A stretch of 33,207 bases of DNA from Octopus bimaculoides (Eukaryota). Within the stretch, counting starts at the first letter, position 1, and every line of letters starts with the position of its first letter. A model generated the notes under the pieces. The model was given only the letters and a program-made list of their open reading frames with translations. It had not been told where the DNA came from and made no database searches. The stretch covers positions 1,063,456 to 1,096,662 of the forward strand of contig NC_069009.1 in the NCBI RefSeq assembly GCF_001194135.2, in the 5' to 3' direction. The position numbers and the translations under genes are program-made. Of the stretch, positions 2,717 to 30,270 are shown in pieces.

Positions 2717-2750
2717 ATGTTGTTCATCATTGTGCTTGCATTGTGTCTTT
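2717..2750 (+). CDS. Gene A signal-peptide exon (MLFIIVLALCL)
   Basis: Acceptor ttatttttcag ends at 2701, ATG at 2717, donor gtaagt at 2751, phase 1. Confidence 0.75.
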
Positions 2751-5700
2751 GTAAGTTTTCTTTTTCTTTTTCTTTTTCTTTTTTTTGTTTCGGGTTATTC
2801 TCGCACATCCTTAGTGGTGGATATCTGTCCGCTAGAGATAGCAGTAGTTCGTTCTAGCTCGCAAAACATAGAAAAATAAATGACAACTAGTCACTGTTAC
2901 TTCGTTAACATTTAGTTTTTGTAAAAATAATCATTTCAGGTATAATTTACATTAATTTCGTGAATAATTGTTATTTAATTATTGTGATATAAATAGTAAA
3001 TGATCCTGTTGTAAAATCTGAAAATCAAAAGCTTTCCTTTTTCATCTTTTACAGGTTTGACGGGAACACAACATTATAAAATTATCCAAAGTGGTAAATG
3101 GATTAACAAACCTTTTCTTCCTTTTAAACTAGATATTACCTTTTCAATTCTCTTTATTAATTCTTTCTCTTAACTCATAGTTTTTAGTCACTGCTTTTTT
3201 TAAAAAATGTTTTATTTCAACCAGGCAGTTCACTAGCGCAACTCAATCACTGATAGTGGCTGTGCTTTAGATAAAGCTACGGATTTGAATCTGCCCAGAG
3301 TTATCTCTCTTTGGTGTTTCCCATTGAGGAAAGCTAATGAGCTAGAAACATGCATGGGGGAATTTGCTGGGGCAGTGGATTTCAACTGGGGTTGATATGG
3401 CTGTTGCAGGTTCATATAGTATTTTGTTACTAAAGTTTATGTACAATTAATTGGTTAAAATTTTACAGTTCACAAAATATTGTAACAGTGTTTTTTGTTA
3501 TACAATTCCTAATGTTTAATTATGAAAATATAATGGAATTTTTTAAACATGTATTTTAAGCCTGAACCTCTAAGTTATAGGGATGTAAACACACCAATAC
3601 TGGCCAGCCTGAAGCTATAGTGGAACACACATCCCCAATTTTCCACACAGTGGGACTGAACTCAAAACCATTTGGTTGAGGTGCATACTTCTTACCTGAT
3701 TTCTTTATTTCAGAAAATGTTGTCCTCAATAAAAGCACCACTCTTCGGATTGTGGTGCCAAATATGCGAAGACCGGTTGCTTGGAGTTGTGGTAACTATA
3801 GATATGAATGTGACACAACATGCATTAACAGCCCTGATTTTAAAGTGACTCAGAGTGAAAACTCATCTACTGTTTGGATCCGAAAAGTTACTAAGGATTC
3901 TTTGTCTTGGACATTTTACGACTTAAACTTCAACAGTGGGAAAATTGATTTAAATATAAACGGTAATTGATTTATAATAATAATGATGATGATGATGATG
4001 ATAATTTCTTTTATTTACTATCTCGGTGTAGGACGAAGGGGACAGTACAATGACAGACTTTAAGTGTGTGGGTTACATATAATGAAATGATAAAAAATAA
4101 TTGAAAGTATGCATTGGTATACAATAAACAAAGAAGGGAAGTATACATAGTATAGAACAGTCGGAGAAAAAAAGATAAGAGTGATGTGATCCTCCTGATA
4201 CAAGAGGGCCTTTAAGGATAACTGAAGAACCCCACTGAACACCAAGGGCAAGTGCCCACTCCGATTCTTATTCTCCAACTCAAAGGTCTACACTTAAAGT
4301 AGTATCATCCTCTCTTTCTATTTTTGTAACTTTCACCCATCTTTCAATTAATAATAATGGTTTCAAATTTTGGCACAATGCCAGCAATTTCTGGGGAGGG
4401 TGGTAAGTTGATTACATCGATCCCAGTGCTCGACCAGTACTTATTTCATTGACCCCGCAAAAGGGTTTAAGGCAAAGTTGGCGTCAGCAGAAATTGAACC
4501 CAGAACGTAAACATAGCTGAAATGCAGCTAAGCATTCATTATCTTGTTTCAACATTTTGGTGATTGTTTATGTTTGAACTGACATTGTTGGGTAGGTGTG
4601 AGAGGCTGAACCTGGTCACATATGTTCAATGCCTTCATTCAAACTGTCACTGTATATAAGGTGTAATAATATCTACAAGTGTTAATTATTGTAACAAAAA
4701 TAGTAATCAACCCCCTTATCTAATCTAAAATCTGAAAATCAATATTTTTGTTTTCATCTTTTACAGGTTTAAGAAAATCAGAAACTTATGAAATTTCTCA
4801 AAATGGTAAATAGATTAACAAAACTTTTCTCCTTTTAAACTAGACACTACATTTTCAATTCTGTCTTCCATCTCTTTCTCTTAACTCATAGTTTTTAGTC
4901 ACAGATTTGTATTTTAATTTCTTTAAGTGTTTATTCCGACCAGGCAGTTCACTAGCACAACTCAATCACTAATAGTGACTGCTTTTTTTAGATAAAGTTA
5001 TGACTTTGAATATGCCCAGAATTCTCTCTCTTTTGTGTTTCCCATTGAGAAAGGCTAAAGAGCTAGAAACATACATTGGGGAATCTGCTGGAGTAATGAA
5101 TTTTAACTGGGATCCTTGACCTGAAGAAAATTCTAACTGGGCCCCACCTGCGAGGTCATGCGCTGTTTATCACCACACAACACCACACACCGCACTACAC
5201 ACCACATCGCACCACACCACACGCAAAGTTGAAACATTAAGCATTATAACAATGATTATCTTTTACTTGTACCAGTCAATAGACTGCAACCATACTGAAG
5301 AATTTTCACTCAAATGAAGCAGACTTCTTACCTGATTTCTTTATTTCAGAATATGGTGTCCTCAGCGTAAGTGGCTATCTTCGCATTGAAATACCAAACA
5401 TGAAAAGACCAGTCATTTGGAGATACCAGAATTATAAATATGAATGTGACCTGACATGCGCCAACAGCACTGAATACAGAGTGACACAAAGTAGGAATGT
5501 TTCGACTTTTTGGATCCGAAACGTAACTAACGAGCGTTTAGATTGGACATTTTGTGACGACAACCTCAACTATGGAAAATTTGATTTGAAGATGCACAGT
5601 AAGGAAATGACTTAATATTAATAATAATAATAATAATTATAATAATAATGATAATAATAATGATAATGATAATTAATAATGTCTAATATTTGTACTCTAT

Positions 5701-8490
5701 TCACTGTACTCTTTCCATTCATTATAGTAAACATCACAAATCTTACCAATGGAGACCATCACCAATTTCTTTGAATTCTGTGAAAACAATCAACCATATG
5801 TTCAATGCTCTCATTTAAACTGCCCCTCTATATAATGTATAATTCTATTTAACAAGTCTTAATTATTTAATTATTGTAACATAAACTGCAATCAATCCTG
5901 TTGATCAAATTTAAAATCTGAAAATGAAAAATTTTTCTTTCCATCTTTTACAGGTTTGACAAAAGCAGAAACTTATATTACCCAAAATGGTAAATGAATA
6001 AATACACTTTTTTCTCCTTTTAAAGTAATCATTGTCTTTCCAATTCTGTCTTCTATTTCTTTTTTTCTAACTCGTACTTTTTAGTGCCATTTTAAAAAAC
6101 TTTTTCTCTGGCTCAATTTCATTTTAAGAGCACCAACCATAAGCATCATTGTTTAATGGCCTCCTTTGATGCTGGAATGAATTGGATAATTAAACAGGAC
6201 CCGACAGGCTGCAGGACTGTGTCAAGCACTTCAACATTTGCTTTGGCATGGTTTCTATCATTGGATACCCTTCCTAATGCCAACCAATTCTACAGAGTGT
6301 ACAGGATGCATGTTTTCATTGCTCAAACACTCTTGAGGTCACCACGTAATTAGGGTTATGGCAGTCATAATAATTATGATTGTGGTTATGATGTTCATCA
6401 TTATCATCTTCATCATCACTGTTATTTAACATCCATGTTCCATGCTGGCATGAGCTGGATGTTTTGACAGGATACAAGTCCGAGGACCATGTCAGGCTCC
6501 AGTGTCTGTTTTATTATGGTTTCTACATGTCAATGCCCTTCCTTACACCATCCAATCTAGAGTGCATACTACATGATATTTTCATGAATTTCTTTTCTAA
6601 TTCTTTTCTAGATTCCACTCTGAGAATGAGACCATTAGCATATAGTAGTCCCCAAGGACAGCCAATCTTAAATTGCTCTGCTAGAGTTTGGGGGACAATG
6701 ATGTATAGGAGGATGCTAAGAACCTGTGACTAAATTCGTTGCTGTACTTATGGCCAACTCTCACCTTACTGACAGAATCCATATACATGGTGTGTACAGC
6801 CATTACAAGCCAATCGTCAACTCCTAGCTTCCTTAGAGACCACCATGTCATGTCAAAGGCTTTCTCCTGCTCAACGAATGCAAGGTGAAATGGTTTACTT
6901 CTAGTTAAATACATCTGAAGTTGTTTTACTAAGAAGATGGAAACAGTAGTCCTTCTTCTNNNNNNNNNNNNNNNNNNNNNNNNNNNNNNNNNNNNNNNNN
7001 NNNNNNNNNNNNNNNNNNNNNNNNNNNNNNNNNNNNNNNNNNNNNNNNNNNNNNNNNNNNNNNNNNNNNNNNNNNNNNNNNNNNNNNNNNNNNNNNNNNN
7101 NNNNNNNNNNNNNNNNNNNNNNNNNNNNNNNNNNNNNNNNNNNNNNNNNNNNNNNNNNNNNNNNNNNNNNNNNNNNNNNNNNNNNNNNNNNNNNNNNNNN
7201 NNNNNNNNNNNNNNNNNNNNNNNNNNNNNNNNNNNNNNNNNNNNNNNNNNNNNNNNNNNNNNNNNNNNNNNNNNNNNNNNNNNNNNNNNNNNNAAGACAG
7301 GAAGAGTGTACAATTGTACACAAAGTAAACACTGCTCCCAAGTATGGAAAAATGGGTGTTAGATTGGCAATGATGACGAAAAAAAATCTCTGAAATTTTT
7401 TCATATTGGAAACAAATCAATAATATTGATTTATCTTTCTATTTCAGTACCTGTTATGCTAGGAGGAAATGTTACTATTCGTGTTGAAGCAAGCTTGATA
7501 GAAACACCCATTTCATGGACAAACGGGCGAAATAATCTCCAATGTATGATAATTTGTGACAAGAACAACAAATATGAAATTACTCACTTTGGTAACGTCT
7601 CAATTCTTTCGATCCGAAATGTAACAGAAGAAGATTTCACTTGGCGTTTTTGTGACTTCTATTTCTGCTCTGAAAATTATACTTTATTGAGGAAAGGTAA
7701 GGAAATTACTTCTGCTAATAATAACAATAATAATTCTTTCTAATTTTGGCACAAGGTCAGTAATTTCATGTGGAAGAGGTTCCTCAGTTACATCAACTTG
7801 AGTATATTTGGCCAGTACTTGGAATACAAGTTTACTAGAAGTTTTGATGGAAGGTTTTACTTTAGATCTCTTTCAAACAGGGAAATGTGTCATATAACCA
7901 GCTGGAAACGATGTTTCCTGGGGCTAAACAACAGTAACATTCATCCCATCCAGGACAGCCACATTATGTTGGCAAATAGTCTTTACTTTAAAGAACTGTT
8001 ACTGAATATCACTCTTTGAGAGATTTAGAAATAATATTTCTATACGTTGCCTTTATTTCAATAAATTTTGAAAATAATGAAGTATTTAATGAAATGACCT
8101 TCTCATTACTAAGCTAGTGTTTGGAAGACAAGTTTACTTGAAATTTGATGGAAGGTTTAGTTTAGATCTCTTTAAAACAGGGAATTTGTACAATAGAAAC
8201 AAAGGCAGTTTTAAGTAGGATAGTATGAAAATGGTTAAACCTGGCAGATATTCTTATCTTTTATTAAAAACAAAAAGTATATATTTTATTGTTTATCTTT
8301 TGCAGATATGGAAACAAAGAACAATTTTGGAGCAAATGGATCAGAAATCAGAATCTTTGCCATAGCCATCTCTTCTATATTTGTCTTTGGAGTCATCCTT
8401 CTCACAATATTCTTTACCATATCCAAATACAGCTCTCGCAACATTTGTAAGAGATACAAAAGCCTCATTTTACAAGGCAGCATTAGTTAG
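2717..8490 (+). CDS. Gene A: spliced gene for a type I membrane glycoprotein with three non-canonical Ig-like domains (359 aa); join(2717..2750,3055..3093,3714..3962,4767..4805,5350..5598,5954..5989,7448..7696,8306..8490)
   Basis: All seven introns are GT-AG and phase 1; the joined exons total 1080 nt and read open from ATG to TAG. Product: hydrophobic leader MLFIIVLALCLCLTGT, three homologous 83-aa domains, TM IFAIAISSIFVFGVILLTIFFTI, basic stop-transfer KYSSR and 10 N-x-S/T sequons in the ectodomain. An extra exon could lie in the gap 6960-7293. Confidence 0.85.
3055..3093 (+). CDS. Gene A 39-nt exon (CLTGTQHYKIIQS)
   Basis: catcttttacag acceptor, gtaaat donor; homologous to 4767-4805 and 5954-5989. 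Confidence 0.8.
3714..3962 (+). CDS. Gene A Ig-like domain 1 exon (249 nt)
   Basis: ctttatttcag acceptor, gtaatt donor; ENVVLNKSTTLRIVVPNMRRPVAWSCGNYRYECDTTC...WTFYDLNFNSGKIDLNIN. Confidence 0.88.
4360..4535 (-). mobile_element. SINE family 1 copy
   Basis: Reverse complement similar to 17274-17480 (gattacatcgatcccagtgctcgaccagtacttatttcattgacccc). Confidence 0.7.
4767..4805 (+). CDS. Gene A 39-nt linker exon (GLRKSETYEISQN)
   Basis: catcttttacag acceptor, gtaaat donor, phase 1-1. Confidence 0.8.
5350..5598 (+). CDS. Gene A Ig-like domain 2 exon (249 nt)
   Basis: Same acceptor context as 3714, donor gtaagg; 47/83 residues identical to domain 1 by hand alignment. Confidence 0.88.
5615..5680. 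repeat. (AAT)n / (GAT)n microsatellite after the Ig exon donor
   Basis: Direct reading; similar short runs follow the donors at 3963, 7697 and 28731. Confidence 0.85.
5954..5989 (+). CDS. Gene A 36-nt linker exon (SLTKAETYITQN)
   Basis: catcttttacag acceptor, gtaaat donor, phase 1-1. Confidence 0.8.
6724..6959 (-). mobile_element. RTE-clade LINE reverse-transcriptase fragment in a gene A intron
   Basis: TTVSIFLVKQLQ...LAFVEQEKAFD...WWSLRKLGVDDWLVMAVHTMY...SKVRVG matches RT subdomains of RTE/BovB-type LINEs; truncated by the gap. Confidence 0.85.
7448..7696 (+). CDS. Gene A Ig-like domain 3 exon (249 nt, more divergent)
   Basis: ctatttcag acceptor, gtaagg donor; VPVMLGGNVTIRV...ISW...CMIIC...SILSIRNVTEEDFTWRFCD shares the motif and length of domains 1 and 2. 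Confidence 0.85.
8306..8490 (+). CDS. Gene A stalk / transmembrane / tail exon
   Basis: atcttttgcag acceptor, phase 1; DMETKNNFGANGSEIRIFAIAISSIFVFGVILLTIFFTISKYSSRNICKRYKSLILQGSIS*. A possible internal donor (gtaaga) lies at 8447. Confidence 0.8.
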
Positions 8491-12223: not shown

Positions 12224-14101
12224 CTGAAAAAAACGAAGGGAAAATTTGTTAATTAAGTTAACTTTGAATTTCACGATGATCATAGATATACGCATGCACA
12301 CACACACACATACATATATATAAATTCTATGAATCTATCTATCTGTGTATATATGTATCTCTCCCCCCTCTCTCTATATACACACACACAAGGTGCGATG
12401 GGTAAATTGTCGCCAATTTATAGCCGGAACCTCGTGGAGCTTTAGGTGTTTTCGCTCAATAAACACTCACAACGCCCGGTCTGGGAATCGAAACCGCGAT
12501 CCTACGACCGCGAGTCCGCTGCCCTAACCACTGGACCATTGCGCCTCCTTGAAATATTGAAATACGAGGTAATAGTACGAACCATCGACCTGTATTATTA
12601 GTTTTTTCTTATAACTGGCTTTGTTTTGGCTCTTTTACTCTTTTACTTGTTTCAGTCTTTTGACTGTGGCCATGCTGGAGCACCGCCTTTAGTCGAGCAG
12701 ATCGACCCCAGGACTTATTCTTTGGAAGCCTAGTACTTATTCTATCGGTCTCTTTTGCCGAACCGCTAAGTTACGGGGACGTAAACACACCAGCATCGGT
12801 TGTCAAGCGATGGTGGGGGGACAAACACAGACATACAAACACATACACACATATATATATACATATATACAACAGGCTTCTTTCAGTTTCCGTCTACCAA
12901 ATCCACTCACAAGGCATTGGTCGGCCCGAGAACATTTATATATATCAAACAATGATTCATGTAAACTACGCGCGCGCACGCGCACATTTGCATCATTTGC
13001 ATTCAGATGAAGAGGATATATTTTAATCACTACCTTTGATGTTTAGAAAAATATCGAATTCTTCATTATTTCCAGGTTTTCTTCTAGCTTCGAAGAATCC
13101 TTGTTGAGCTGAAGCTCCCCACTCGATTCTGAAATGCGGGTCCCTGAAACCAATATATTACAATTGACAAATTTAATAAAAAAATAATTAAAAGAAAAAA
13201 ATTTCACGATTGTATTTACGACAATCATTTCTGTTTAATTAAATCGATGAGTTTATCATTTCATTTCTGAAATTAGTGCTTCATACCCAGGTTGTTGTTA
13301 TTCATTGATATAGAAGGTGATAATGACATGTAATTTGGGTTAATGAGATCTTGTTACTTTAGCTTCAGTTCGGCTATGACCAAGGAGATTTGTGATTAAA
13401 AGCCATTCCAACCATAACAATCCGGTCGTATTTCCTTCTAAAACAGAATGTATGTCGGACCAAAGCAACCAGAGATAATACAGTGTTATTTGAGTGGAAA
13501 TAAACATAGGTTATTGAAAAAGGTTGCAAGACGCAACGAAAATTTTAGGAAAATAAAAATAAGAAATAAGTGGAAATTTTAACGGTGTGTGTGTGTGTTA
13601 AATTTCAAGGCACAATAAGAAAATGACTCTCCCCAGACACAACAGAATATGCTTCAACACACGAAATCACATAAAAAAAATCTTGCAAACCAAATCCAAA
13701 AACGAAACATAGATTGTTATAAAAAAACAAAACAGGATATTCTATCAACTCCCACTTATTCAATTATCGGAATCACGTATTTTTTAACGCATTGCCTGAG
13801 TGAAAGGATTTCTTCTGAGCATGAGGTAATAAACTGAAGAAGGNNNNNNNNNNNNNNNNNNNNNNNNNNNNNNNNNNNNNNNNNNNNNNNNNNNNNNNNN
13901 NNNNNNNNNNNNNNNNNNNNNNNNNNNNNNNNNNNNNNNNNNNNNNNNNNNNNNNNNNNNNNNNNNNNNNNNNNNNNNNNNNNNNNNNNNNNNNNNNNNN
14001 NNNNNNNNNNNNNNNNNNNNNNNNNNNNNNNNNNNNNNNNNNNNNNNNNNNNNNNNNNNNNNNNNNNNNNNNNNNNNNNCAAAACTTATGGTTAATAAAG
14101 A

Positions 14102-14138
<37 letters not shown>

Positions 14139-16935
14139 GTCATCGTCGTCGTCGTCATCGTCATCGTCATCGTCATCATCATCATCATCATCATCATCGT
14201 CGTCGTCATCATCATCCTCCACTGTGAAAGTGTCCAAATGAACTGTTCTTAAATAATTAAAGGTTATTAAATATAAATGCCACCTCAATGTAATATTAAT
14301 GCTTTGTGGAGAATTGAAGGGAGCCATCAGGACCGGAAGCGACATCATGTCAAGAAGCGGGGATTTTGGACGGCTTCTTTCTTGGCCAAGACTATGAGGT
14401 GAAGACACGTGAGGAGCGGATGTCAGAGGGATTGTAGTTTCTGGCCAGATGTTCGGGTAGAGTACGTTTGTAGGTACGTCTAACACGATCTTCTGATCCC
14501 AGTGCATGATACCCTGTTTGATATTTATCTCTCACTAGATGGGAGTATTTCTTTTGTCGAGTCTACCTTATGGGATCTTTCAAAAGAACCATTATTATAT
14601 AATTAAAGATGTTCAGGGAAATAATATATATACTTCTCTTTGAAAGTAAGGTTCCGTAGAACCTGATTCTGTTGATTTACAATGATTTTATCTTTCTGGA
14701 ACCACGATGTAGAATCCGTCCCCGTTCCATTGAAAACTAATAAGTAATCATCTTCATTTACACGTGTTTTTCTCACTCGAAATTCCACCTGAAAATAGAA
14801 AGTTGACGCTGATCAGTAAAGAAACTAAGAGAGTGAGGAAGGATAGACTTGTATAAAGAGAAAGGAGACTAGGATATGATTATAGGGAGGGAGTAGGTGG
14901 GCGAGAAGGAGATTGGGAGAGAAATAGAGTAAGAGAGACCCAGAGCAAAAGAGAATAAGATTAGAGATGTCGCGAAAAAGGAAGAGAAAGAGAAGGAGTG
15001 AAAGTGAGAGGACGGAATGTAAAATAGAGATTGAAGAATTGCTAGATTAAGACAGAGAGGGGAAAAGAATTTGGATTTAGGAGCAAAACACAGGGAAATT
15101 AAGTNNNNNNNNNNTTTTGGTTTCGGAGTCTTTGCTAAAGATTCGTTGCATCTTCGTAATGCAGAGTACGAAAAGCATTAATGACACCATTGCAATATTG
15201 ACAGAAAAAAAAGGTAAAAAGCTAAATACGCACAAAAGATATCGGATTGACAAATATGTAGATTGTTTATTAAATGAGAATCATTTTAAAGTTTCAAAAA
15301 TTCATTACCTTTTTAATAGGAAGTTTGTCCCAATATAAATACACAGGACTTCTTTTAAATGACTTTACGGTCATCTCAAACACTTTCTGCCAGCTTGTAC
15401 CTGTATCAGCAACAAATAGTAATCAATAATTTAGATGTAAAGATACAGACAGGATGTTAACCGTTAAACGGTAGGAAAGGATTGCATAAACGTGTTTGAC
15501 AAATGGGCGAAAAACGAAAAAATATCTCTTTTATATAAGGATAATTTTTATACTTGTGGAGGCGCAATGGCCCAATGGTTAGGGCAGCGGACTCGCGGTA
15601 TTAGGATCGCGGTTTCGATTCCCAGACCGGGCGTTGTGAGTGTTTATTGAGCGAAAACACCTAAAGCTCCACGAGTCTCCAGTAGGGGATGGTGGCGAAC
15701 CCTGCTGTACTCTTTCACCACAACTTCCTCTCACTCTTTCTTCCTGTTTCTGTTGTACCTGTAATACAAAGGGTCAGCCTTGTCACACACTGAATATCCC
15801 CGAGAACTACGTGTCTGTGGAGTGCTCAGCCACTTGCACGTTGATTTCACGAGCAGGCTGTTCCGTTGATCGGATCAACTGGGACTCTCGATGTCGTAAG
15901 CAACGGAGTGCCAACAACAAATTTTTATACTTATTTTCACTTTAAAAAGGTACAAATAATATTATGATTATTGTTAGTCACTCGTATGATAACATTTACA
16001 ATCTCCGTTTAAAGTGCAGTTTCATTTGCATCCGGTATGAGCATAAATTCATTTGAGACACCTGTATTGCTGTAATCAAGCGAATGTACAAATTGAGAAA
16101 AGTCGATGCACTTTATCGATCTAGAGCTAGTTGAAGCTTGACTTTCTTCTGTTCTATCTAGAACATCATCTATTTCATCTCACGAAGAAGAAATTTGGGA
16201 AAAATCCTCTTCATTGCGGCACCAAAACTACGAAATTCTTCACGCTTTCTTCTATCATTGAAGCTAAGATAAATATATTTTGGTTAAAAGTAATTTAGAT
16301 CTAATCTTAATTGGAGGCATTACTTACTCTCCTATAACGTCGCTACAAATTTTAATGTAAATTTTTTTCTACAGGACTAAATCTCAATTTTTTAATGCCA
16401 AAATGTAGCTAGGGACAAATCATCTTCAAAAATGTTAACGGTCTTCCATTTGGTTACGAACTGAATTAGCGAGAAGCTCTGAAAATGCTGCGTGTGAGTA
16501 AATTGCGGCCTTGAGAATATTATTAAACTGCTACCGTAAATGATATGACATAGGGTTAATAATTATAAAAATTTGAAAAGCACGCAGGAAAATTGTGATT
16601 TACTTACTGTTTCCAGAGATTAAAATATACGATAAGCAGTTGCAATCAGAATCTTTAATTTCTTCGTCATAAAATGATTGATGCATATAACATAGGTTTT
16701 TACAGTAAGTAAAATATTCGCATTCATTCTGTAAAATACACTGAAGCGCACAGTCTTCGGCAGATGTCGTGTTTCCAGTTATTTTATTCGGATCAGTTAA
16801 GCATTTTGATGCAGTGACTTCTCTGAAGAGGACTTCTATACACGCTGATTCTCCAGTTCTCGCGGTCACGAAAAATACAAGAACTAAAACCGGCAGCGAT
16901 ATGAGAAGCAAATGATATTGGATTGGTGTTTTCAT
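12174..16935 (-). CDS. Gene C: secreted protein with PAN/Apple domain plus uncharacterised C-terminal domain (244 aa); complement(join(12174..12223,13034..13143,14634..14788,15309..15400,16608..16935))
   Basis: Four GT-AG introns with matching phases (1,0,2,1); 735 nt open to TAG. Hydrophobic leader followed by the PAN-type pattern SAEDCALQCILQNECEYFTYCKNLCYM; second domain SWQKVF...YWDKLPIKKVEFRV...LVFNGTGTDSTSWFQKDKII...LEALVVSVQLK*. The last two exons are corroborated by the paralogue at 32175-32544. Confidence 0.82.
12385..12548 (-). mobile_element. SINE family 2 copy (5' part)
   Basis: Reverse complement of the 15558 head. Confidence 0.78.
12632..12910. mobile_element. Third SINE-like dispersed repeat
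   Basis: tactcttttacttgtttcagtc...tgactg(t/c)ggccatgctggagcaccgccttt recurs at 29398-29455 and degenerately at about 5262-5300 and 31915-31970. Confidence 0.6.
13034..13143 (-). CDS. Gene C exon (DPHFRIEWGASAQQGFFEARRKPGNNEEFDIFLNIK)
   Basis: tggtttcag acceptor, gtagtg donor, phase 2 to 1; homologous to 32438-32544. Confidence 0.78.
14100..14217. repeat. Compound (AAT)n / (TCG,TCA)n microsatellite
   Basis: Direct reading; source of the poly-D, poly-Y and poly-M ORF artefacts. Confidence 0.95.
14634..14788 (-). CDS. Gene C exon (VEFRVRK...LVFNGTGTDSTSWFQKDKII...TFKE)
   Basis: ctattttcag acceptor, gtatat donor, phase 0 to 2. Confidence 0.78.
15309..15400 (-). CDS. Gene C exon (STSWQKVFEMTVKSFKRSPVYLYWDKLPIKK)
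   Basis: gatacag acceptor, gtaatg donor; 92 nt bridges phase 1 to phase 0 exactly. Confidence 0.75.
15558..15920 (+). mobile_element. tRNA-derived SINE, family 2
   Basis: Head ggaggcgcaatggcccaatggttagggcagcggactcgcgg...ggtttcgattccc (A/B boxes); near-identical heads at 30280 (+) and 12548 (-). Confidence 0.8.
16608..16935 (-). CDS. Gene C first coding exon: signal peptide + PAN/Apple domain
   Basis: Acceptor tcatttttcag two nt before the ATG at 16935; donor gtaagt after 16608; C-x3-C-x5-C-x2-F-x-Y...C spacing typical of PAN domains. Confidence 0.85.
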
Positions 16936-17273: not shown

Positions 17274-17480
17274 GGCGGCGAGCTGGCAGAATCGTTAGCA
17301 CGTCGGGCGAAATGCCTAGCGGTATTTCGTCTGCCGTTACGTTCTGAGTTCAAATTCCACCGAGGTCAACTTTGCCTTTCATCCTTTCGGGGTCGATTAA
17401 ATAAGTACCAGTTACGCACTGGAGTCGATGTAATCGACTTAATCCCTCTGTCTACCCCAGTGGGCAATAAAGAAATAAAT
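17274..17480 (+). mobile_element. tRNA-derived SINE, family 1 (near full-length copy)
   Basis: Pol III A-box-like tggcagaatcg and B-box-like gagttcaaatt, then a body (gactttgcctttcatcctttcggggtcgat...aagtaccag) repeated many times in the window. Confidence 0.8.
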
Positions 17481-20130: not shown

Positions 20131-22010
20131 GAAGCAAGCTTATATACATACATTCAGAAAGAGAAGGGGTTTAGCTTGCTAGATGGATGGATGGATGGAT
20201 TAGTAGACAGACAGACAGACAGATAGATAGATCGGTATGTAGGAAGGTAGGTAAACAGATAGATAGATAGAGATACGGGGGAATTTATACGCAACAAAAT
20301 TCGGGAAACCGGCATTATGAGCCTATGATTCACACACACGTGTATGTGTGTGTGTTAATATGTACTTCTGCATATACAATCATTAAAGGTTCATTGATCA
20401 AGCGTGATACATTTGACCCACGCGTAACGTAAATATTAAGAATGGCAAAAAAAAAAAGGCTGATTGATTTAAGAGAAGTAACAAGTTCAAGCAAGAAATA
20501 TCCGATTGTTCTTTTAAATGTTTGAGGCATAAATTGGTTAAATAATTTCGAGGGAATAAAATGGAAATATTTGCTTCAAATTTTGGCACAAGGCCACCAA
20601 TTTCGGGGAGGGTTTAAGTTGATTACATCGAACCTCAGTGTTCAGTTGGCATTTATGTTATCGACTCCGAAAGGATAAAACGCAAAGTCAACAATGGCGG
20701 AATTTGAACTGAGAACGTGATGGCGGAGGCAATGCCGCTTAGCATTTTGCCCGGAGCGGTAACGATTCTGCCAGCTCGACTCCTTGTAAACTAGAAAGAT
20801 TGATAACTCCCAGATGCTGATTTTTATAAAACAAACTAGAGGATAATCAATATTGATTGATTTATTAAAAGCATATTTTTATCTTCTCAAAAGCTATCGT
20901 GTTATGACTATTTTACACGTTTAAGTAGCCATATTTTTCATCAATATAAACAAACGGGCGTATACTTACATATTCATATATATATATATANNNNNNNNNN
21001 NNNNNNNNNNNNNNNNNNNNNNNNNNNNNNNNNNNNNNNNNNNNNNNNNNNNNNNNNNNNNNNNNNNNNNNNNNNNNNNNNNNNNNNNNNNNNCTTAATT
21101 TATAATTTTCTCAGAGATATTTTACATGTTTTGGTTCTTGAAAAAACGAACCTTATCAAAAATACATATTTTTTAAAAAAATGTTATTAAAAGAAAAGTT
21201 CTTAATTGTTTCTTACTGGTGTCCATATATATACATATATAGAGGCATATATATACATATATAGATAGATATATACATATATAGAGGCAATTATGTGGAT
21301 AAACAAATTTTAGAAGACACTTGCCCAAGGTGTCGCGCAGTGGGACTGAATCCAAAACCATGTGGTTAGGAAGCAAGCTTATATACATACTTTCAGAGAG
21401 AGAGAGAGAGAAGCAGGTTAGCTTGATGGATGGATGGATTGATAGACATACAGATACGCAAACAGACAGACAGACACATAGATAGATAGATAGATATTTT
21501 AGAGATATGGAGGAATTTATATGCAACAAAATCCGCGGAAACGGCCTCTTGAACCTACTATTCATACACACACACGCGTGCGCGCGCGTGAATGTGTACA
21601 TATGCATATACAATCATTAAAGGTTCATTGATCAAACATGATACATTTGACACGCCATTGATAAACTCACGCGTAACGTAAATATTAAGAATGGGAAAAA
21701 AAAGGCTGATTGATTTAAGAGAAGTAACAAGTTCAAGCAAGAAATGTCCGATTGTTATTTTAAACGTTTGAAGCATAAACCGGTTAAATAATTTTGAGGG
21801 AATATAATGGAAATATTAATAACTCCCAAATGCTGTTTCTATAAAACAAACTAGAGGCTAATCAAGAGATAATCAATATTGATTGATTTATTAAAAGCAT
21901 ATTTTTTATCTTCTGAAAAGCTATCGTGTTATGACTATTTTACACGTTTAAGTAGCCATATTTCTCATCAATAAAAACAAACGGACGTATACTTACATAT
22001 TCATACATAT
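20131..22010 (+). repeat. About 0.65-kb local tandem duplication (20131-20990 and 21370-22010)
   Basis: Long shared blocks such as catatacaatcattaaaggttcattgatca and aagctatcgtgttatgactattttacacgtttaagtagccatattt. Confidence 0.85.
20572..20795 (-). mobile_element. SINE family 1 copy inserted in one arm of a local duplication
   Basis: Reverse complement similar to 17274-17480; absent from the sister copy at about 21817. Confidence 0.75.
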
Positions 22011-22599: not shown

Positions 22600-23760
22600 T
22601 ATGGACAAATTGTGAGAACTAAAGAGCTTTGTCAAGGTATTAATTTATGTCAGGGACTTTTAATGGATGACACCGGTGTCATTCAAACAGCAAAAATTTG
22701 CCGGCAACATCCTTTACTCTACATATTTCTAACATAACCACTGAGAACTGATCTTAATATATACACACCAGTTAACAAACGATATATATTCTCCGTGGCA
22801 AAACGTAAGTAACTTGTTCCCCCATTTCGAACGTGCAGCAAACATATTCGCACTGATAATAACATTGATATTTCTAACTAGTTCTGCTAATATAATATAA
22901 ATGTTGGCACTATCATGCTATTAGCTCTCCAACGCGGAGTATAGGCCACTTATAATTGAATTCCATGTCGCATAATTTTCCGCTTCTGTACTTATACTCT
23001 GCCATGAATGTCCCCCTTTCTCTAGTTTCTTTTGTGTTGATCTACGCCACGAGTTCTTAAGCCTACCCCTCTTTCTATATCCATCCGGATTCCACTGTAA
23101 AGCACTTTTCGCTACATTTGGTCTGTCTTTTCTAATTGTGCTACCAATCCACTTCCACTTTTTCTTAAATATTTGCTCCCTAATCGAAACTTGATTTGTT
23201 CTTTGCCATAGCTCCATATTGCTTCTGTGTTCGGGCCATCTGATTTTAAGTATACTACGCAAGCACCTGTTGATGAATGATTGTATTTGCTTAATTGACT
23301 TAACTGTTTTTCGCTATGTCTCAGCCCCAAACAATAACACCGCTTTTACGTTAGTGTTAAAAATTCTTATTTCGTTCTTTATTGAAATTACACTAGTTCG
23401 ACTAACTTAATTAATTTCATTATGTGACGTTGAGGTAAACGTTAATGTTTGTGGGATAAGTTAAAAGTGAGCTACATGTTTCAGTGTCGGTGTTCCATAG
23501 GCTTCGTGATTAGACATTTCATTTCATCCGCAAGCTACAGCGTTAATTGGTTGTCCTCTAATTAACAGGAACAGGACCAAACGAACAAATAAGCTCTTCA
23601 TCAGCCACAAATGAACGAATGGTTTTCTTCAGTTTTTAGTTGACTTTCAAATAGAAAACAGTAATTATTATTTGGATGACCGTAACAGAAAAAGAAATTG
23701 GCTCGCTTTTCCTTCAGCCCGTAGTGAACAATCGTCGACGTCTGACAACTGACTTGGTAG
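22600..23760 (+). repeat. Dispersed element with an inverted copy at about 29790-30270
   Basis: Shared blocks include agggacttttaa, gatgacaccggtg, aaaagtgagctacatgtttc, gactttcaaatagaaaac and tggctcgcttttcct. This copy is split by the RTE insertion. Confidence 0.8.
22891..23391 (-). mobile_element. 5'-truncated RTE-clade LINE with probable target-site duplication
   Basis: IFNTNVKAVLLFGAET*RK...FINRCLRSILKIRWPEH...KWKWIGSTIRK...ALQWNPDGYRKRGRLKNSWRR is the RTE C-terminus. Flanked by actagttctgctaa (22877-22890) and actagttcgactaa (23392-23405). Confidence 0.88.
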
Positions 23761-24085: not shown

Positions 24086-24932
24086 AATACTGGATGACAT
24101 TGGAATTAAAGAAAGTCTTTCATAGAAGGAGAATATCTATGTTCCAGTGAAAGGAGAATAATTATAGAAAATGGATTGTGTAAGAACAAGTGTGAAAAGG
24201 TTGATTTTACTGATGGAATTCCAAAGGATACATGAAAAGCATTTTACCACTGTGACGTCTTTAAAAAGACATCATTCTCTCAAAAAGGTAACCACACTAC
24301 TCAGAAATGTTTTCTTACAGGACGGAAGCCATATCACTGAGGTAACTATGGAAAATCATTCTTTGAAACAAGTAAATTAACTACACCCAAACTTACTCAT
24401 AGAGGAGAGAGAGAGAGGCCATATCGTTGTGAAATCTATGGTAACTCATTCTCTCAAACACATCACTTAATTGAACATAAATGTATTCACATTGGAGAAA
24501 CCATATCACAGTGAAATCTGTGGAAAATCTTTCTCTCCTGGAAATAACTATACATAAGCATATTCATACAGGCAAGAAGCAATATCACTGTGACATCTTT
24601 TGTGAACATTTCTCAGACAGAAGTTAATTACCTGCACAAAAATGCATTCATACAGGTGATAAAATATATGACTTGATATCTGTAGTAAATCATTCTCAAA
24701 GAAGTCACTTAATTGAACATAAATTTATTTGGAAAGCAGAGAAACCATTTCACTGTGAAATCTGTGGCAACTCATTCTCTTGAAAGACATAAATTAATTA
24801 CACACAAACTCTCTCATCGAGGGGAGAGAGGCCATCTCACTGTGACATCTGCAGCAACATATCTTTACAGGAGAAAAACCATATTTCTATGATATCTGTT
24901 GTAAATCTTTCTCTCAAATAAATATATTAATT
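24086..24932 (+). pseudogene. Decayed 5' part of the zinc-finger exon (several frameshifted and stop-containing fingers)
   Basis: Acceptor gatgtttcag ends at 24085, followed by recurring remnants such as ccatatcactgtgacatc, aaatcattctct and attcatacagg with indels and stops. Confidence 0.75.
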
Positions 24933-26132
24933 ATGCAGAAAGGTACACATTCAAAAACGAATCTTTATCAGTGTTCTGTTTGTGGTAAATTATTCTCTCA
25001 CAATGGTCATTTTACTAAACACAAATTCACTCATAGAGGTAAACCATATCACTGTGATATCTGTAGTAAATCATTCTCTCAAAGCTATCACTTGACTAAA
25101 CACAAGCATGTTCATACAGACGAGAATGCACATCGCTGTAAAATCTGTGGTAAATTATTCCCTGAAAAATATTCCTTAGCTACACACAAACGTATTCATG
25201 CAGGAAAGAAGCCACATCGTTGTGAAATCTGTGATAAATCATTCTCTCACAGTAATAGCTTAGCTACTCATAAATTCACTCATACAGGAGAAAAACCACA
25301 TCACTGTGAAAAGTGTGGTAAATCATTCTCTTACAAAAGTACCTTAACTATGCATAAACGTATTCATACAGGAGAGAAACCATATCATTGTGATATCTGT
25401 GGTAAATCATTCTCTGAAAGATCTTCCTTAACTACACACAGACGTATTCATACAGGAGAGAAAGCGCACCACTGTGAAATCTGTGGTAAATTTTTCTCTC
25501 AAATAGGTATCTTGGTTACACACAAACGTATTCATACAGGTGAGAAACCATATCATTGTGATATCTGTGGTAAATCATTCTCTCAAACTGGTGGCTTAAC
25601 TAGACACAACCGCATTCATACAGGAGAAAAGCCATATCATTGTGATATCTGTGGTAAATCTTTCTCTCGAAATGGTGACCTAACTAAGCACCACCGTATA
25701 CATACAAGAGAAAAGCCATATCACTGCGATATCTGTGGTAAATCTTTCTCTCAAACTGGTGGCTTAGCTAAACACAACCGTATTCATACAGGAGAAAAGC
25801 CATTTCATTGTGAAATCTGTGGTAACTTATTCTCTGAAAGACATTCCCTAACTGCACACAAACGTATTCATACAGGAGAAAAGCCCTATCACTGTGAAAT
25901 CTGTGGTAAATTTTTCTCTCAGATAGGTATCTTAGTTACACACAAATATATTCATACAGGAGAAAAGCCATATCACTGTGATATCTGTGGTAAATCTTTC
26001 TCTCAAAATGGTGGCTTAACTAGACACAACCGTATTCATACAGGAGAAAAGCCGTATCATTGTGATATCTGTGGTAAATCATTCTCTGCCAGGCATTCCC
26101 TAACTGCACACAAACGTATTCATACAGGGTGA
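24933..26132 (+). CDS. C2H2 zinc-finger protein, 14 tandem Kruppel-type fingers (399 aa)
   Basis: Fourteen C-x2-C-x12-H-x3-H units, mostly with TGEKP linkers, in one open frame; no KRAB or other effector domain visible. The start Met sits inside a degenerate finger, so the true start is uncertain. Confidence 0.88.
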
Positions 26133-26315
26133 AAGCCAAATCACTGTGATATCTGTTGTAAATCTTCCTCTGAAAGTTCTGCCTTGTTTAAACACAACAG
26201 TATTCATACAGGGGGAAAGCCATATAATTGTGATGTCTGTGAGAATCCATTCTCTGAAAGTGAAAATTTAAATGAACACTTACCTAGTCATACATGTGTA
26301 AAACCATATCACTGA
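26133..26315 (+). pseudogene. Two further in-frame C2H2 fingers after the ZNF stop codon
   Basis: After TGA at 26130-26132 the same frame reads KPNHCDICCKSSSESSALFKHNSIHTGGKPYNCDVCENPFSESENLNEHLPSHTCVKPYH*. Confidence 0.75.
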
Positions 26316-26662
26316 CATGTTTACGACGAAACTGATCAATTTTTATTTATTCTTTTAAATTTTATTTTGCAATTTCCGTAAAAANNNNNNNNNNNNNNNN
26401 NNNNNNNNNNNNNNNNNNNNNNNNNNNNNNNNNNNNNNNNNNNNNNNNNNNNNNNNNNNNNNNNNNNNNNNNNNNNNNNNNNNNNNNNNNNNNNNNNNNN
26501 NNNNNNNNNNNNNNNNNNNNNNNNNNNNNNNNNNNNNNNNNNNNNNNNNNNNNNNNNNNNNNNNNNNNNNNNNNNNNNNNNNNNNNNNNNNNNNNNNNNN
26601 NNNNNNNNNNNNNNNNNNNNNNNNNNNNNNNNNNNNNNNNNNNNNNNNNNNNNNNNNNNNNN

Positions 26663-26860: not shown

Positions 26861-27103
26861 CTATAACAGGGCTGACCAAAATCGAAATGAAATTAAAAAC
26901 AATGTTTTCTCCTTTAAGAAAAGTAAAAGAAACCCAGTGAGCTGATGTCTGTCATTGTTTCTTGGATTTCTTATGAAACTTGTAAATTTAGACATCAAAA
27001 TCACCAAAGCAACGCCAAGTATGCCGAAGACGAGTATGATATGGATTTGTAGGCTGCTGGCTCCTGTTGCATTAGTTTCAAGATCGTTTGTTGTGGTTTT
27101 TAT
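26861..27103 (-). CDS. Gene B stalk / transmembrane exon (IKTTTNDLETNATGASSLQIHIILVFGILGVALVILMSKF...)
   Basis: ttcatcttttgcag acceptor homologous to that before 8306; hydrophobic segment with the VFG motif shared with gene A; one nt longer than gene A before the aligned AAC codon. Confidence 0.6.
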   Translation of the reverse strand: MKTTTNDLETNATGASSLQIHIILVFGILGVALVILMSKFTSFIRNPRNNDRHQLTGFLLLFLKEKTLFLISFRFWSALL

Positions 27104-27747
27104 CTGCAAAAGATGAACAATAAAAGATATACCTTTTGGTTTTAATAAAGAATATTAAAATACCAACCTGCTCAAAATTGCTTTTGTTTCTATTTTACAA
27201 ATTCCCGGTTCTAAAAAGATCTAAAATAAAATCTTCCATCAACTTTATGTTCCACACTCTAGCTTAGCAATGACAAGGTTATTTTACTAAACTTTTCATT
27301 GTCATAAAATTTTATTGAAACAAAGGCAATGCATTTCAACAAAAACAAGGTTAGAAAAGGGTTAACACCCACTAGTATCCTAGACTAAAATGATAACATC
27401 TTCAGATCAGTCCATCATTTAGAAGGGTATTTTGCATCAGCAGTTGTGTCAATTTTTGTTATTAATGATATTTTCCTCTTTGAATTCTTGTTTCACAAAC
27501 AAGAGACTGGAAAATGTCATTCATTTCTATAACAATTAAATAGTACAATAGACAGATGATCCTAGACAATAAAACTAACTAATCCAGTCCTTCAACTATA
27601 AAAATATCCCACCATGGGTTATTATCAAAACTTATCAATTCAAAGCAGAGAAGAAAAACTAACACAGAAGCAAACCTTAAAATTGTCAAGTTACAAATTT
27701 TGAATTTGCCTAAATATTATGAAAATATTTGCACCACTATTATTATC

Positions 27748-28117: not shown

Positions 28118-28730
28118 GGGAAAGCGGAGAGGTAGCAGATAAGTTAGCGCATCAAACAAAATGCTTAGCAACATTTTGCCCATCTTTATATTCTGAGTTC
28201 AAAATCCACTAAAATCTACTTTACTTTTCAAGCTGCCTTCCCTGAAATTACTGGCATTGTGCCATAATATGAAACCATTATTATTAATAATATGATGAGG
28301 TGCTGGCACAATCGTTACAATGCCAGGCAAAATGCTTAGCGGCATTCTGTCTGTCCTTACTTTCTTAGTTCAAATTCCACCAAGATCAACTTTGCCTTTC
28401 ATTCCTTAGGAGTCAATGTAATAAATACCAGTTACGCAGTGGGGGTCGATGTAATCAACTTACCCACCCCCACAAAATTTCAGGCTTTAGGTCTATAGTA
28501 GAAAGGATTATTATTATTATTATTATAAATCATTTTCTTACTGTCCTTACTTTCTGAGTTCAAATTCCACCAAGGTCAACTTTGCTTTTCATTCCTTAGG
28601 GGTCAATGAAATAAATACCAGTTACACAGTGGGGGTTAATGTAATCAACTTACCCACCCCCACAAAATTTCAGGCTTTAGGTCTATAGTAGAAAGGATTA
28701 TTATTATTATTATTATAAATCATTTTCTTA
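28118..28730 (+). mobile_element. Cluster of SINE family 1 copies, including a 190-bp tandem duplication
   Basis: Repeated aaatgcttagc / gagttcaaattccacc / tttgcctttcatt motifs. Confidence 0.7.
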
Positions 28731-28734
28731 CTGT
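28351..28734 (+). repeat. 190-bp tandem duplication
   Basis: ctgtccttac at 28351 and 28541, ctgt at 28731; the 3' halves are identical. Confidence 0.9.
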
Positions 28735-28974
28735 TTATCTTCAAATCGATTTTTGCAATATTGAGTTTGTTATCATAAAATGTCCAAGATGAAGGTTCCT
28801 TTATTACGTTTCGTATCCAAAGAGTGGAAATGTCACCAGTGTTCATAACTTGAAATTCAGGAATGGTGCAGCATGTCCCGTCACATTCATAATTCAGACA
28901 TTTCCATGTCATCAGTCTTCTCATATTTGGTATTTCAGTATGAAGAGTGGAACTTCCTTTAAACACAACATTTT
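28732..28974 (-). CDS. Gene B Ig-like domain exon (81 codons, open)
   Basis: cctgatttctttattttag acceptor, gtaaga donor; most similar to gene A domains 1 and 2. Confidence 0.75.
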
Positions 28975-29332: not shown

Positions 29333-29789
29333 TGTAAATCCAAAAAATAACAACAAAACTACTAAGGATTCCGCGGTACACGTGTTTCAAGCTTTATATA
29401 CTCTTTTACTTGTTTCAGTCATTTGACTGCGGCCATGCTGGAGCACCGCCTTTATATGTGTATAATTTACAATATAAAGCTATCCTCAGCCGCAAAATTA
29501 TTTCTCTCCCAGGAAATTAACGTCCGTTTTCCACGCTGGCATGGAATATATAATATATAAATTATATATATATATATATATATATAAATGTAACTTACGC
29601 GGGTCACCGCCCACTTCAGTTTCTTAACACAAATTAAGCCAAGTTAATTATTATTTCGGTCTTTTGAAATAAATTAAAGCGAATTAATAACCGTTTTATA
29701 ATTTGACTAACAGTTAAGCAAGTATTTCTAGAACATGACTTACCTGTTTCGAAGTATTTTCTTATTGATTTCTGTAATTCGGAGTAAGC

Positions 29790-30270
29790 CGAGTCCATTT
29801 GTAGTCCTAATAAATGAGGTTGTTCATTATGGGTTGGAGGAAAAGCGAGCCAGTGGCTTCCGTTACCGTCATCCAAATAATTATTACAGTTTTCTATTTG
29901 AAAGTCGACTAAAAAGTGAAGAAAGACGAGGAAAGCTATTCGTTCATACGTGGCTGATTAAAAACTTCGTTTAGGCCTGCTCTTGTTAATTAGGGAACAA
30001 CCAATTAACGATGTAGTTTGCGGGTGAAATGAAGTATATAATCACGAAGCCGATGAACTACTGACCTAGAAACATGTAGCTCACTTTTATCTTATCCACA
30101 AACATGTCACATAATGAAATTTACTAAATTGGCTGAACTTATTAGAAATATGTACATTGACGGTGTCGCTGCTAAAATTTACCTGTCTGAATTTTGTCAC
30201 CGGTGTCATCCGTTAAAAGTCCCTAACGTAAATTAATATATTGCGAAATCCCTTTAGTTCTCTGTTCCTT
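29790..30270 (-). repeat. Uninterrupted inverted copy of the 22600-23760 element
   Basis: Reverse complement aligns across the RTE insertion point of the other copy. Confidence 0.8.

Follow-up and report, generated by a model that had tools for sequence, protein, structure and literature searches.

The canonical I-set domain of the immunoglobulin superfamily (IgSF; PF07679), as found in obscurin, titin, NCAM and sDscam Ig1, is a sandwich of strands A/A'-B-C-C'-D-E-F-G without a C'' strand, with a Trp in strand C, a disulfide between strands B and F, and a D-x-G-x-Y-x-C tyrosine corner. The B-F disulfide is typical of the IgSF, but it is not obligatory for membership. Domain 1 of CD2, a protein of cell-surface adhesion, is an extracellular Ig domain that naturally lacks it, and hydrophobic packing takes the place of the intersheet disulfide. 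The Alr proteins of Hydractinia form a lineage-specific, clustered group of type I IgSF molecules whose Ig domains escape standard motif-based detection; the folds predicted for these domains are canonical Ig folds, with non-canonical disulfides inside a sheet (PMC9546547). Many Alr domains have neither the core Trp nor the disulfide; the N-terminal domain is of the V-set, the membrane-proximal fold is Fn3-like, and many of the tails carry ITAM or ITIM motifs (PMC9546547). In molluscs, the FREPs combine IgSF domains with a C-terminal fibrinogen domain.

The locus described here lies in a 33,207-nucleotide stretch of the Octopus bimaculoides contig NC_069009.1 (the window), which holds four copies of a domain of ~95 residues, three of them in gene A and one in gene B. 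Gene A occupies 2717-8490 of the + strand in eight exons, with GT/AG at every splice site and phase 1-1 in all internal exons, and its 1080-nt ORF encodes 359 residues with no premature stop. The product is identical (100% over 100% of the length) to A0A0L8I036_OCTBM, a 359-residue “uncharacterized” entry of UniProt/UniRef. Exon 1 (2717-2750) provides the ATG and a short hydrophobic signal peptide (MLFIIVLALCLC). Each Ig-like domain is then encoded by a mini-exon and a larger exon. For domain 1, these are the 39-nt exon 2 (3055-3093, phase 1-1), which covers the linker and the A/A' strand, and the 249-nt exon 3 (3714-3962, phase 1-1) with strands B-G; for domain 2, the A strand is in mini-exon 4 (4767-4805) and strands B-G are in exon 5 (5350-5598); and for the membrane-proximal domain 3, the A strand is in the 36-nt mini-exon 6 (5954-5989) and strands B-G are in exon 7 (7448-7696), which has the C81-C86 type of cysteine pair and a sub-threshold Pfam I-set match. 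This two-exon module has been duplicated together with its introns. Exon 8 (8306-8490) adds the short stalk, the transmembrane helix and a cytoplasmic tail of ~22 residues with one YKSL, and ends in the stop TAG.

Two features of this gene model deserve comment. The signal peptide is minimal, with 12 hydrophobic residues and without a charged n-region, since the ancestral start codon has become ATC: this in-frame codon, at 2705-2707, stands at the place of the first Met (MDVQMLFF...) of the O. sinensis relative P0056. The other feature is an assembly gap (a run of N at 6960-7293) within intron 6, between exons 6 and 7, adjoined on its left by a LINE reverse-transcriptase-like fragment on the minus strand (6681-6959). 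The gap leaves the reading frame undisturbed, exon 6 exiting and exon 7 entering in phase 1, and the junction of ...TYITQN with VPVMLGG... is the mini-exon-to-domain junction of every paralog. An extra two-exon module inside the gap would take up at least ~1.6 kb, whereas the gap is estimated at 334 nt; since all modules are of phase 1-1, even a hidden one would keep the frame. A tRNA scan run to classify the SINE-like repeats found nothing.

A motif linking the four domain copies had been put forward in the initial annotation, and it matches exactly at gene A residues 48-94, 144-190 and 239-285 and at gene B residues 24-68. When each domain was searched against the window by tblastn, only exons 3, 5 and 7 of gene A and one minus-strand exon of gene B (28974-28732) were found, the E-values among the four copies being 1e-9 to 1e-29, far beyond chance. 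All three gene A domains keep the invariant residues of the family core (W36, C45, C49, S64, I68, W78 and D82).

The overall layout proposed earlier for gene A, with a signal peptide, ten sequons, one transmembrane helix and a short tail, was confirmed from the spliced ORF: there are ten N-x-S/T sites, and the single hydrophobic span at ~residues 313-337, which has only an Arg at its outer boundary, follows domain 3 after only ~16 residues. Scanning of the family tails turned up no ITIM or ITAM pattern in any of them, in contrast to KIR/LILR/CD22-like receptors. Unlike the FREPs, gene A ends in its helix and short tail, and scanning its full length with Pfam found no fibrinogen domain. A full-length AlphaFold2 (AF2) model built from 8 sequences reached a pLDDT of 51, which is too poor to use for the domain arrangement. 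We think it rather probable that gene A encodes a type I membrane glycoprotein of the IgSF with three divergent, tandem I-set-like domains, which presumably meets a binding partner at the cell surface.

The proposal that the domain has an Ig fold is borne out by structure prediction, structural search and profile comparison alike, each of which gives an I-set-like Ig domain. The AF2 model of domain 1, based on a 54-sequence domain alignment, has a pLDDT of 94.7 and a pTM of 0.85 and shows eight strands, in the order A', B, C, C', D, E, F, G. In the Foldseek search of the PDB, its top matches were all Ig domains (probability 1.00, TM 0.6-0.69), including obscurin Ig32, titin I27/M1/M4/I10, an antibody VL and sDscam Ig1. 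By hhalign, the family matches canonical obscurin-type I-set domains with 95.6% probability (E 1.2e-8), and the whole-protein profile matches vertebrate obscurin-like Ig arrays with E down to 6.6e-57, a value summed over repeats. Weak Pfam I-set matches occur in 14 of the 54 family domains, the best score in gene A being 21.7 bits, under the gathering cut-off of 23.7. A divergent, I-set-like Ig fold is thus fully supported as the predicted structure of the domain, by the model and the alignments together.

The residue mapping also upholds the details claimed at the outset. The Trp of strand C is retained: Trp36 aligns with its canonical counterpart and does not vary in any of the 54 domains. 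The E-strand pattern is likewise kept, with an E strand and turn of the S-T-L-x-I-x-N-V kind, and strand B is of the G-x-x-V-T-L type. At the position of the B-strand Cys, hhalign places Ile25 (Ile, Val or Thr across the family). In strand F, W-x-F replaces Y-x-C: Trp78 aligns with the Tyr, and Phe80 with the Cys, 44 of the 48 octopod domains having Phe at this place. Phe80 is preferred to the ungapped hhalign placement of position 81, which we rejected; positions 76, 78 and 80 (L, W and F) form a conserved hydrophobic face, alternating with variable residues at 77, 79 and 81, and a one-residue gap is needed in both the titin and the abalone alignment. The octopod domains thus have no B-F intersheet disulfide and no D-x-G-x-Y-x-C corner, the place of which is taken by [DC]-L-x-W-x-F-x-D, shorter by a one-residue deletion. 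The CxxxC that had been noticed after strand C (ECDTTC) is placed by hhalign as a six-residue insertion following strand C' and is present in 52-54 of the 54 domains. CD2 is among the weak PDB sequence matches; it has no specific sequence relationship to the octopod domain and no CxxxC insertion.

The cysteines beyond the CxxxC call for a change to the earlier reading. Domains 1 and 2 do have three Cys each, as stated there, and domain 3 has four; the third Cys, however, is better read as an orphaned half of one of two accessory disulfides, which co-occur in paralogs, than as a free residue for bonds between domains or chains. Across the domains C38 occurs with C75 and C81 with C86, and in Haliotis C10 occurs with C91, so that these predicted pairings derive from co-occurrence rather than from coordinates. 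The likeness to Alr has to be qualified as well. It holds as a conceptual one, both being clustered type I IgSF molecules of invertebrates; the octopod proteins, however, keep the Trp, are I-set-like throughout, and have neither an Fn3-like fold nor ITAM/ITIM motifs, and no sequence homology to Alr is claimed.

The nearest relatives outside octopods are abalone proteins. Haliotis LOC124119024, LOC124122840 and XP_071095869, all uncharacterised, have tandem domains of ~95 residues followed by one transmembrane helix, and their consensus W...C-N-P-S-C...S-T-L-T-I-x-S-V...D-x-G-T-W-x-I-x-D has the CxxxC and the W-x-hydrophobic-x-D at positions aligned with those of the octopod domains. In hhalign comparisons, the Haliotis domains match the octopod profile at 91.4% (E 9e-7) and the canonical I-set at 65.9%. 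Identity to domain 1 of gene A is only ~17-20%; the abalone domains keep the canonical D-x-G spacing, in contrast to the one-residue deletion in octopods, and have an extra N-/C-terminal cysteine pair (CPGG ... VCQL) and no A-strand sequence of the mini-exon type. Their F strand, D-A-G-T-W-x-I-x-D, is intermediate between the canonical and octopod forms. The link suggests that molluscs have an old Ig sub-type overlooked by present domain libraries.

A profile search returned 45 matches, among which members proper came only from O. bimaculoides, O. sinensis, O. vulgaris and Argonauta hians; there were no cnidarian proteins among the 45, and no members from squids, cuttlefish or Nautilus in the protein libraries searched. 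About 35 related protein clusters from the three Octopus species and Argonauta were collected, none named for a function; the labels are “uncharacterized” or “hypothetical”, except for the “zinc finger protein 239-like” P0034, whose model looks chimeric. A word-indexed homolog search with the domain alignment added one further protein, P0056. A single 21.3-Mb scaffold of O. sinensis carries at least 9 loci, and a single 34.6-Mb scaffold of O. vulgaris at least 8. Giant profile matches of up to 7323 residues were considered as huge arrays of the domain and discarded, being vertebrate obscurin-like proteins with canonical Ig repeats, 0 of which have the motif. A fish CD22-like match, P0047, is likewise a generic canonical-Ig match. 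Pfam, PDB, profile and literature searches matched no characterised family, and searching by accession, LOC number and topic found no paper on the octopod family. On sequence grounds, genes A and B are members of a multigene family of octopods that is so far uncharacterised and has distant abalone relatives.

Gene B (29798-27078, minus strand) has a single domain copy, in an exon of 243 nt (28732-28974) that encodes strands B-G of one Ig-like domain with two codons deleted relative to gene A. Its annotated first exon (29744-29798, minus strand; MDSAYSELQKSIRKYFET) is unrelated to the signal-peptide exon of the family and encodes no hydrophobic leader, and DNA similarity to gene A located no signal-peptide exon or A-strand mini-exon for it in the window. 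A homolog of the stalk/transmembrane exon is present at 26978-27103 on the same strand, with an A-run at 27099-27103. Read through the family's phase-1 junction, it gives NKNHNKRS and then a stop (27078-27080); the transmembrane-like peptide sits in another frame. The idea that gene B is an intact receptor has to be given up, its product (P0029) having no signal peptide, no A-strand mini-exon and a transmembrane exon out of frame. Judged by these sequence features, gene B is a truncated or pseudogene-like copy, apparently in decay.

The features above can be accommodated in one proposal. Each gene A domain is built from a mini-exon of 36-39 nt for the A strand and a 249-nt exon for strands B-G. 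A hydrophobic Ile/Phe pair replaces the canonical B-F disulfide, and the invariant C-x3-C of the C' insertion would pin the fold instead, supplemented by accessory cysteine pairs that vary between lineages. The family would expand as the two-exon module, or a whole gene, is duplicated in tandem, and would also lose copies, gene B being one in decay. The gene A product would stand on the cell surface and bind its partner, homophilic or heterophilic, through the membrane-distal domains. We infer for it a role in adhesion or recognition, possibly as a ligand-binding subunit, and not that of a self-contained signalling receptor.

Between modules, exons are 69% identical and flanking introns 85% (p 1.3e-6), and between genes A and B the figures are 66% and 84% (p 4.7e-5). 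Exons less conserved than their introns are what might be seen in a recognition system (for innate immunity, self/non-self or gametes) that diversifies rapidly, evolving by birth and death with accelerated or diversifying exon change, as in the polymorphic IgSF recognition genes of invertebrates. The family is also lineage-restricted, multigene and partly clustered, with a decayed gene B adjoining an intact gene A; domain 1 shares only 78% identity with its closest O. sinensis relative, and the cysteine pattern differs between close relatives. However, pairwise dN/dS of the domain exons is 0.33-0.56 in the closer pairs, which indicates some constraint, and divergence is inflated to the same degree at synonymous and non-synonymous sites, which selection on the protein does not account for. 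As the tails, moreover, have no ITIM/ITAM, we regard such a system as unlikely. It is likewise improbable, in our estimate, that an octopod-specific recognition code (self/non-self, gamete or neuronal identity) was built on a molluscan CxxxC, W-x-Φ-x-D Ig sub-type older than the cephalopod-gastropod split, with exons driven to change faster than introns, and with duplication and alternative splicing varying the number of domains and the A-strand mini-exons.

The same dN/dS values, being moderately high, could be taken as a sign that gene A, too, is a paralog in decay or without function, its ORF being still open only by chance and the functional members lying elsewhere. Its ancestral start codon is lost and a minimal leader is left, domains 1 and 2 are without the partners of the accessory disulfides, and the neighbouring gene B is plainly degenerate. 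Yet the ratio is below 1, the eight in-frame exons have intact GT/AG sites over 1080 nt, and every invariant core residue is present in the three domains, which makes decay of gene A quite unlikely. Far less probable still is that the domain is some other β-sandwich, be it Fn3, cadherin-like or a viral CR1/RL11-type domain acquired from a virus. Domain 3 has a weak Pfam match to Adeno_E3_CR1 (E 0.004), and Foldseek matched Ig-like proteins of adenovirus, cytomegalovirus and EEHV at E ~1e-3; the viral domains in question, however, are Ig-like too. Both the profile-profile comparison and the best PDB matches lead to cellular I-set/V-set domains, the weak PDB sequence matches are all IgSF except for a few marginal ones at E 0.5-0.9, and exons of phase 1-1 are the typical arrangement in animal IgSF genes. 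A viral origin from adenovirus CR1 or CMV RL11 was rejected, the similarity being only generically Ig-like. An IgSF surface protein with an adhesion or recognition role remains our preferred reading of gene A.

To our knowledge, cephalopods have no adaptive immunity. Among their surface receptors, the protocadherins are known to have expanded, alongside the C2H2 zinc fingers (PMC10084454). An octopod-restricted, unstudied membrane family would add candidate molecules of adhesion and recognition beside the protocadherins. If exons diverge faster than introns across the whole family, it may also have followed an unusual evolutionary regime; the basic classification, as a predicted IgSF membrane protein, would be unchanged. 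The family would further offer a clean example of an Ig fold that tolerates the loss of its hallmark disulfide and may be pinned anew by other cysteine pairs.

Gene A of Octopus bimaculoides, the three-domain gene on the plus strand at 2717-8490, is real, intact and annotated in databases yet unstudied; it belongs to an immunoglobulin superfamily (IgSF) family that is restricted to octopods and whose Ig domain is non-canonical. Its spliced protein is 100% identical, over all 359 residues, to the UniRef entry A0A0L8I036_OCTBM ("Uncharacterized protein"). There are eight exons with GT/AG at all splice sites: the leader MLFIIVLALCLC (2717-2750), three modules that each join a mini-exon of 36-39 nt (3055-3093, 4767-4805 and 5954-5989) to a domain exon of 249 nt (3714-3962, 5350-5598 and 7448-7696), and a last exon (8306-8490) for a ~16-residue stalk, the transmembrane (TM) helix and a ~22-residue tail. 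The domain motif that the initial annotation had described was matched exactly at residues 48-94, 144-190 and 239-285, with its fourth copy at residues 24-68 of the minus-strand gene B. When each domain was compared with the whole window by tblastn, these four domain exons and no others were found, with E values of 1e-9 to 1e-29 between copies; judged by sequence, the copies are repetition by descent, and chance is ruled out. The ten N-glycosylation sequons and single TM helix claimed earlier were also borne out, the latter as the only hydrophobic span (~313-337), and the protein has 13 cysteines in total.

The leader of gene A is minimal in length, and 12 nt upstream of the start lies an in-frame ATC where P0056, the closest O. 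sinensis relative (N-terminus MDVQMLFFLVLALCLCLT...), has its initiator Met; that gene A is itself in decay nevertheless seems to us unlikely. An N run (6960-7293) falls within intron 6, and, gap lengths being estimates, an extra domain module could conceivably be hidden there. Such a module would, however, require at least ~1.6 kb, and it would leave the frame unchanged because all modules are phase 1-1. Exon 6 leaves phase 1 and exon 7 enters phase 1 through a normal polypyrimidine/AG acceptor, and their join (...TYITQN/VPVMLGGNVTI...) is the mini-exon-to-domain junction of all three-domain paralogs. A LINE reverse-transcriptase-like ORF fragment (6681-6959, minus strand) enters the gap from the left, which indicates that the extra length of intron 6 is a transposon insertion. 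A second such fragment lies at 22921-23262 (minus strand); neither has a Pfam match at E<=0.01. Six more assembly gaps are found at 1630-2058, 13844-14079, 15105-15114, 20991-21093, 26385-26662 and 32312-32321.

Read-through past the exon 7 donor (7697-7744, plus strand) would give GKEITSANNNNNNSF and a stop, and isoform X2 of the paralog LOC106882146 (P0003) ends in the homologous retained-intron peptide, GKEITFANNNNNNSFQFWHK.... The family thus includes an annotated isoform that lacks the TM helix and is probably secreted, and one is possible for gene A too.

The initial annotation had proposed an Ig-like fold, and we hold this classification with high confidence. With eight sequences, AF2 modelled the full-length protein poorly (pLDDT 51); for domain 1, a model built on a 54-sequence single-domain alignment reached a pLDDT of 94.7 and a pTM of 0.85, with strands at 9-11 (A'), 21-26 (B), 34-38 (C), 41-45 (C'), 55-60 (D), 63-68 (E), 77-81 (F) and 87-91 (G). 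Its top Foldseek matches in the PDB were Ig domains only (probability 1.00, TM 0.6-0.69), including obscurin Ig32 (E 5.5e-5), titin I27/M1/M4/I10, antibody VL, shark vNAR, sDscam Ig1 and Kirrel3; among viral models, only Ig-like proteins were returned. Profile-profile comparison of the family with the canonical obscurin-type I-set gave 95.6% probability (E 1.2e-8), and a repeat run agreed. The weak matches in PDB sequence searches were nearly all IgSF proteins, and Pfam I-set matched 14 of the 54 family domains weakly; domain 3 had sub-threshold matches to I-set (21.7 bits, cut-off 23.7) and Ig_3. A non-Ig fold, the outcome that the initial annotation had named as refuting its proposal, was thus not what these comparisons showed.

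All four of the earlier structural inferences proved correct. By hhalign, TTLRIV lies over FTLRCE, which places Ile25 at the B-strand Cys; Trp36 takes the C-strand Trp, the E-strand pattern is retained, and ECDTTC, which carries the CxxxC pair, is a six-residue insertion past C'. For strand F, altered to W-x-F, HMMER alignment to titin with a one-residue gap puts Trp78 at the canonical Tyr and Phe80 at the canonical Cys. The placement is settled by the abalone domains, whose canonically spaced D-A-G-T-W-x-I aligns with D-S-G-D-Y-S-C and, with a one-residue gap, with octopod D-S-L-S-W-T-F. In the column statistics, positions 76, 78 and 80 are conserved hydrophobic (L, W, F), whereas 77, 79 and 81 are variable. 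The family is IgSF by fold and profile homology, though it lacks two textbook features of the I-set, the B-F disulfide and the D-x-G-x-Y-x-C motif.

CxxxC is present in 52-54 of the 54 domains and supplies the sole cysteines of seven; its two cysteines most likely form a bond that spans the C'-D loop, as cysteine co-occurrence suggests. There are also three accessory pairs whose partners strictly co-occur: in 14 domains, C38 of strand C (Trp+2) is accompanied by C75 of the E-F turn; in the nine membrane-proximal domains, C81 is accompanied by C86 of the F-G hairpin; and the abalone domains have an N-terminal/C-terminal pair. In gene A, domain 1 has C38 but lacks C75, and domain 2 has C81 but lacks C86. 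The cysteines once described as free in these domains are real, but are better read as halves of accessory bridges left without a partner.

A profile built on eight full-length proteins was run with no word index over 1.84 billion cluster representatives and had 45 matches. The motif is borne by matches from O. bimaculoides (at least 12 loci, genes A and B counted), O. sinensis, O. vulgaris and Argonauta hians, all of them labelled "uncharacterized" or "hypothetical" except P0034, a chimeric-looking model labelled "zinc finger protein 239-like". Squid, cuttlefish and Nautilus proteins did not appear, a result that depends on library content, and we found no paper naming these loci. At least nine O. 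sinensis loci lie on a single 21.3-Mb scaffold and at least eight O. vulgaris loci on a single 34.6-Mb scaffold; others map to different chromosomes. Members carry one to four domains, many loci have multiple predicted isoforms, and several models skip the A-strand mini-exon (e.g., P0004 and P0007 versus P0005). The very long matches turned out to be obscurin-like proteins of vertebrates, whose Ig repeats are canonical, a result that in itself supports Ig homology. In three Haliotis proteins, tandem domains share this CxxxC together with W-x-I-x-D, scoring 91.4% to the octopod profile versus 65.9% to the canonical I-set, so this Ig sub-type may be old in molluscs.

Tandem duplication of a unit made up of mini-exon, intron and domain exon gave rise to the three modules of gene A. 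Between modules 1 and 2, the intron flanks are 83-86% identical (370/435), against 69% for the domain exon (172/249) and 64% for the mini-exon (exon vs intron p 1.3e-6); between genes A and B, the last exon is 66% and the preceding intron 84% identical (p 4.7e-5). Across all stretches compared (modules, 2971-4005, 4619-5646 and 5795-6105; genes A/B, 8046-8305 and 27104-27330), intron flanks show 76-86% identity and exons 64-70%. Among domains 1, 2 and B, dN/dS is 0.33-0.56, and pS, at ~0.5, far exceeds intron divergence; synonymous sites have diverged as much as the rest. Selection on the protein alone does not account for this pattern. Gene conversion limited to introns, replacement of exons by other paralogs and accelerated exon evolution are each possible explanations. 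A (TAA/ATA/ATG)n microsatellite within ~10-20 nt past the donor of every domain exon (3968-4000, 5613-5680, 7720-7740 and 28690-28715) seems to belong to the duplicated module.

Gene B is a decaying copy, unless the A-run at the start of its TM exon is an assembly error. Its annotated product, P0029 (107 aa), is put together from three segments: a first exon unrelated to the family (MDSAYSELQKSIRKYFET; 29798-29744, minus strand), the domain exon (28974-28732, minus strand) and a homolog of the TM exon from 27103 (minus strand), whose first codons in the family phase read NKNHNKRS-stop; the TM-like peptide (…LQIHIILVFGILGVALVILM…) sits in another frame. Neither a signal-peptide exon nor a mini-exon was detectable for it within the window. 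The family evolves by birth and death.

A ~190-nt SINE-like repeat has at least seven copies in the window (4349-4536, 17311-17441, 20566-20746, 28331-28516, 28547-28706, 30772-30874 and 31555-31684), in which ARAGORN detects no tRNA-like structure; two tandem copies (TRF 28351-28734, 95% identical) start at the donor of the gene B domain exon and duplicate the donor region. Adjoining the 3' end of gene B, a 399-aa ORF with at least 11 C2H2 zinc fingers (24933-26132, plus strand; 84-nt unit, tandem repeat 24866-26260) heads toward the gap at 26385-26662, which is bordered by (AT)n and (TATG)n repeats and lies ~300 nt downstream of the final gene B exon. P0034 of O. sinensis fuses zinc-finger sequence to one family Ig-like domain; the adjacency may recur, or annotation may merge the two. 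Farther off, a 111-aa ORF (16600-16935, minus strand) has a hydrophobic leader, a cysteine-rich region and a sub-threshold PAN/Apple match (20.1 bits, cut-off 21.4); it may be one exon of a further gene that encodes a secreted protein.

The gene A protein is type I in topology, has the potential for heavy glycosylation and carries a short, variable tail with one YKSL; ITIM and ITAM were absent from all family tails scanned. Such tails favour a surface molecule over an autonomous signalling receptor, and we tentatively infer an adhesion/recognition molecule or ligand-binding subunit, a reading to which we give a little under even chances. The likeness to Hydractinia Alr proteins drawn earlier is only conceptual: in these the first domain is V-set, the spacer is Fn3-like, the tails bear ITAM/ITIM, and the core Trp is missing from many Ig domains (PMC9546547), features that set them apart from the octopod family. 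FREP identity was rejected for want of a fibrinogen domain; nor is the protein a KIR/LILR-type receptor. A diversifying immune or self/non-self role of the family we consider unlikely. The fold and architecture of gene A are ordinary for animal surface proteins; what makes the family worth following is its restricted distribution, its re-wired disulfides, the link to abalone and the divergence of exons over introns.
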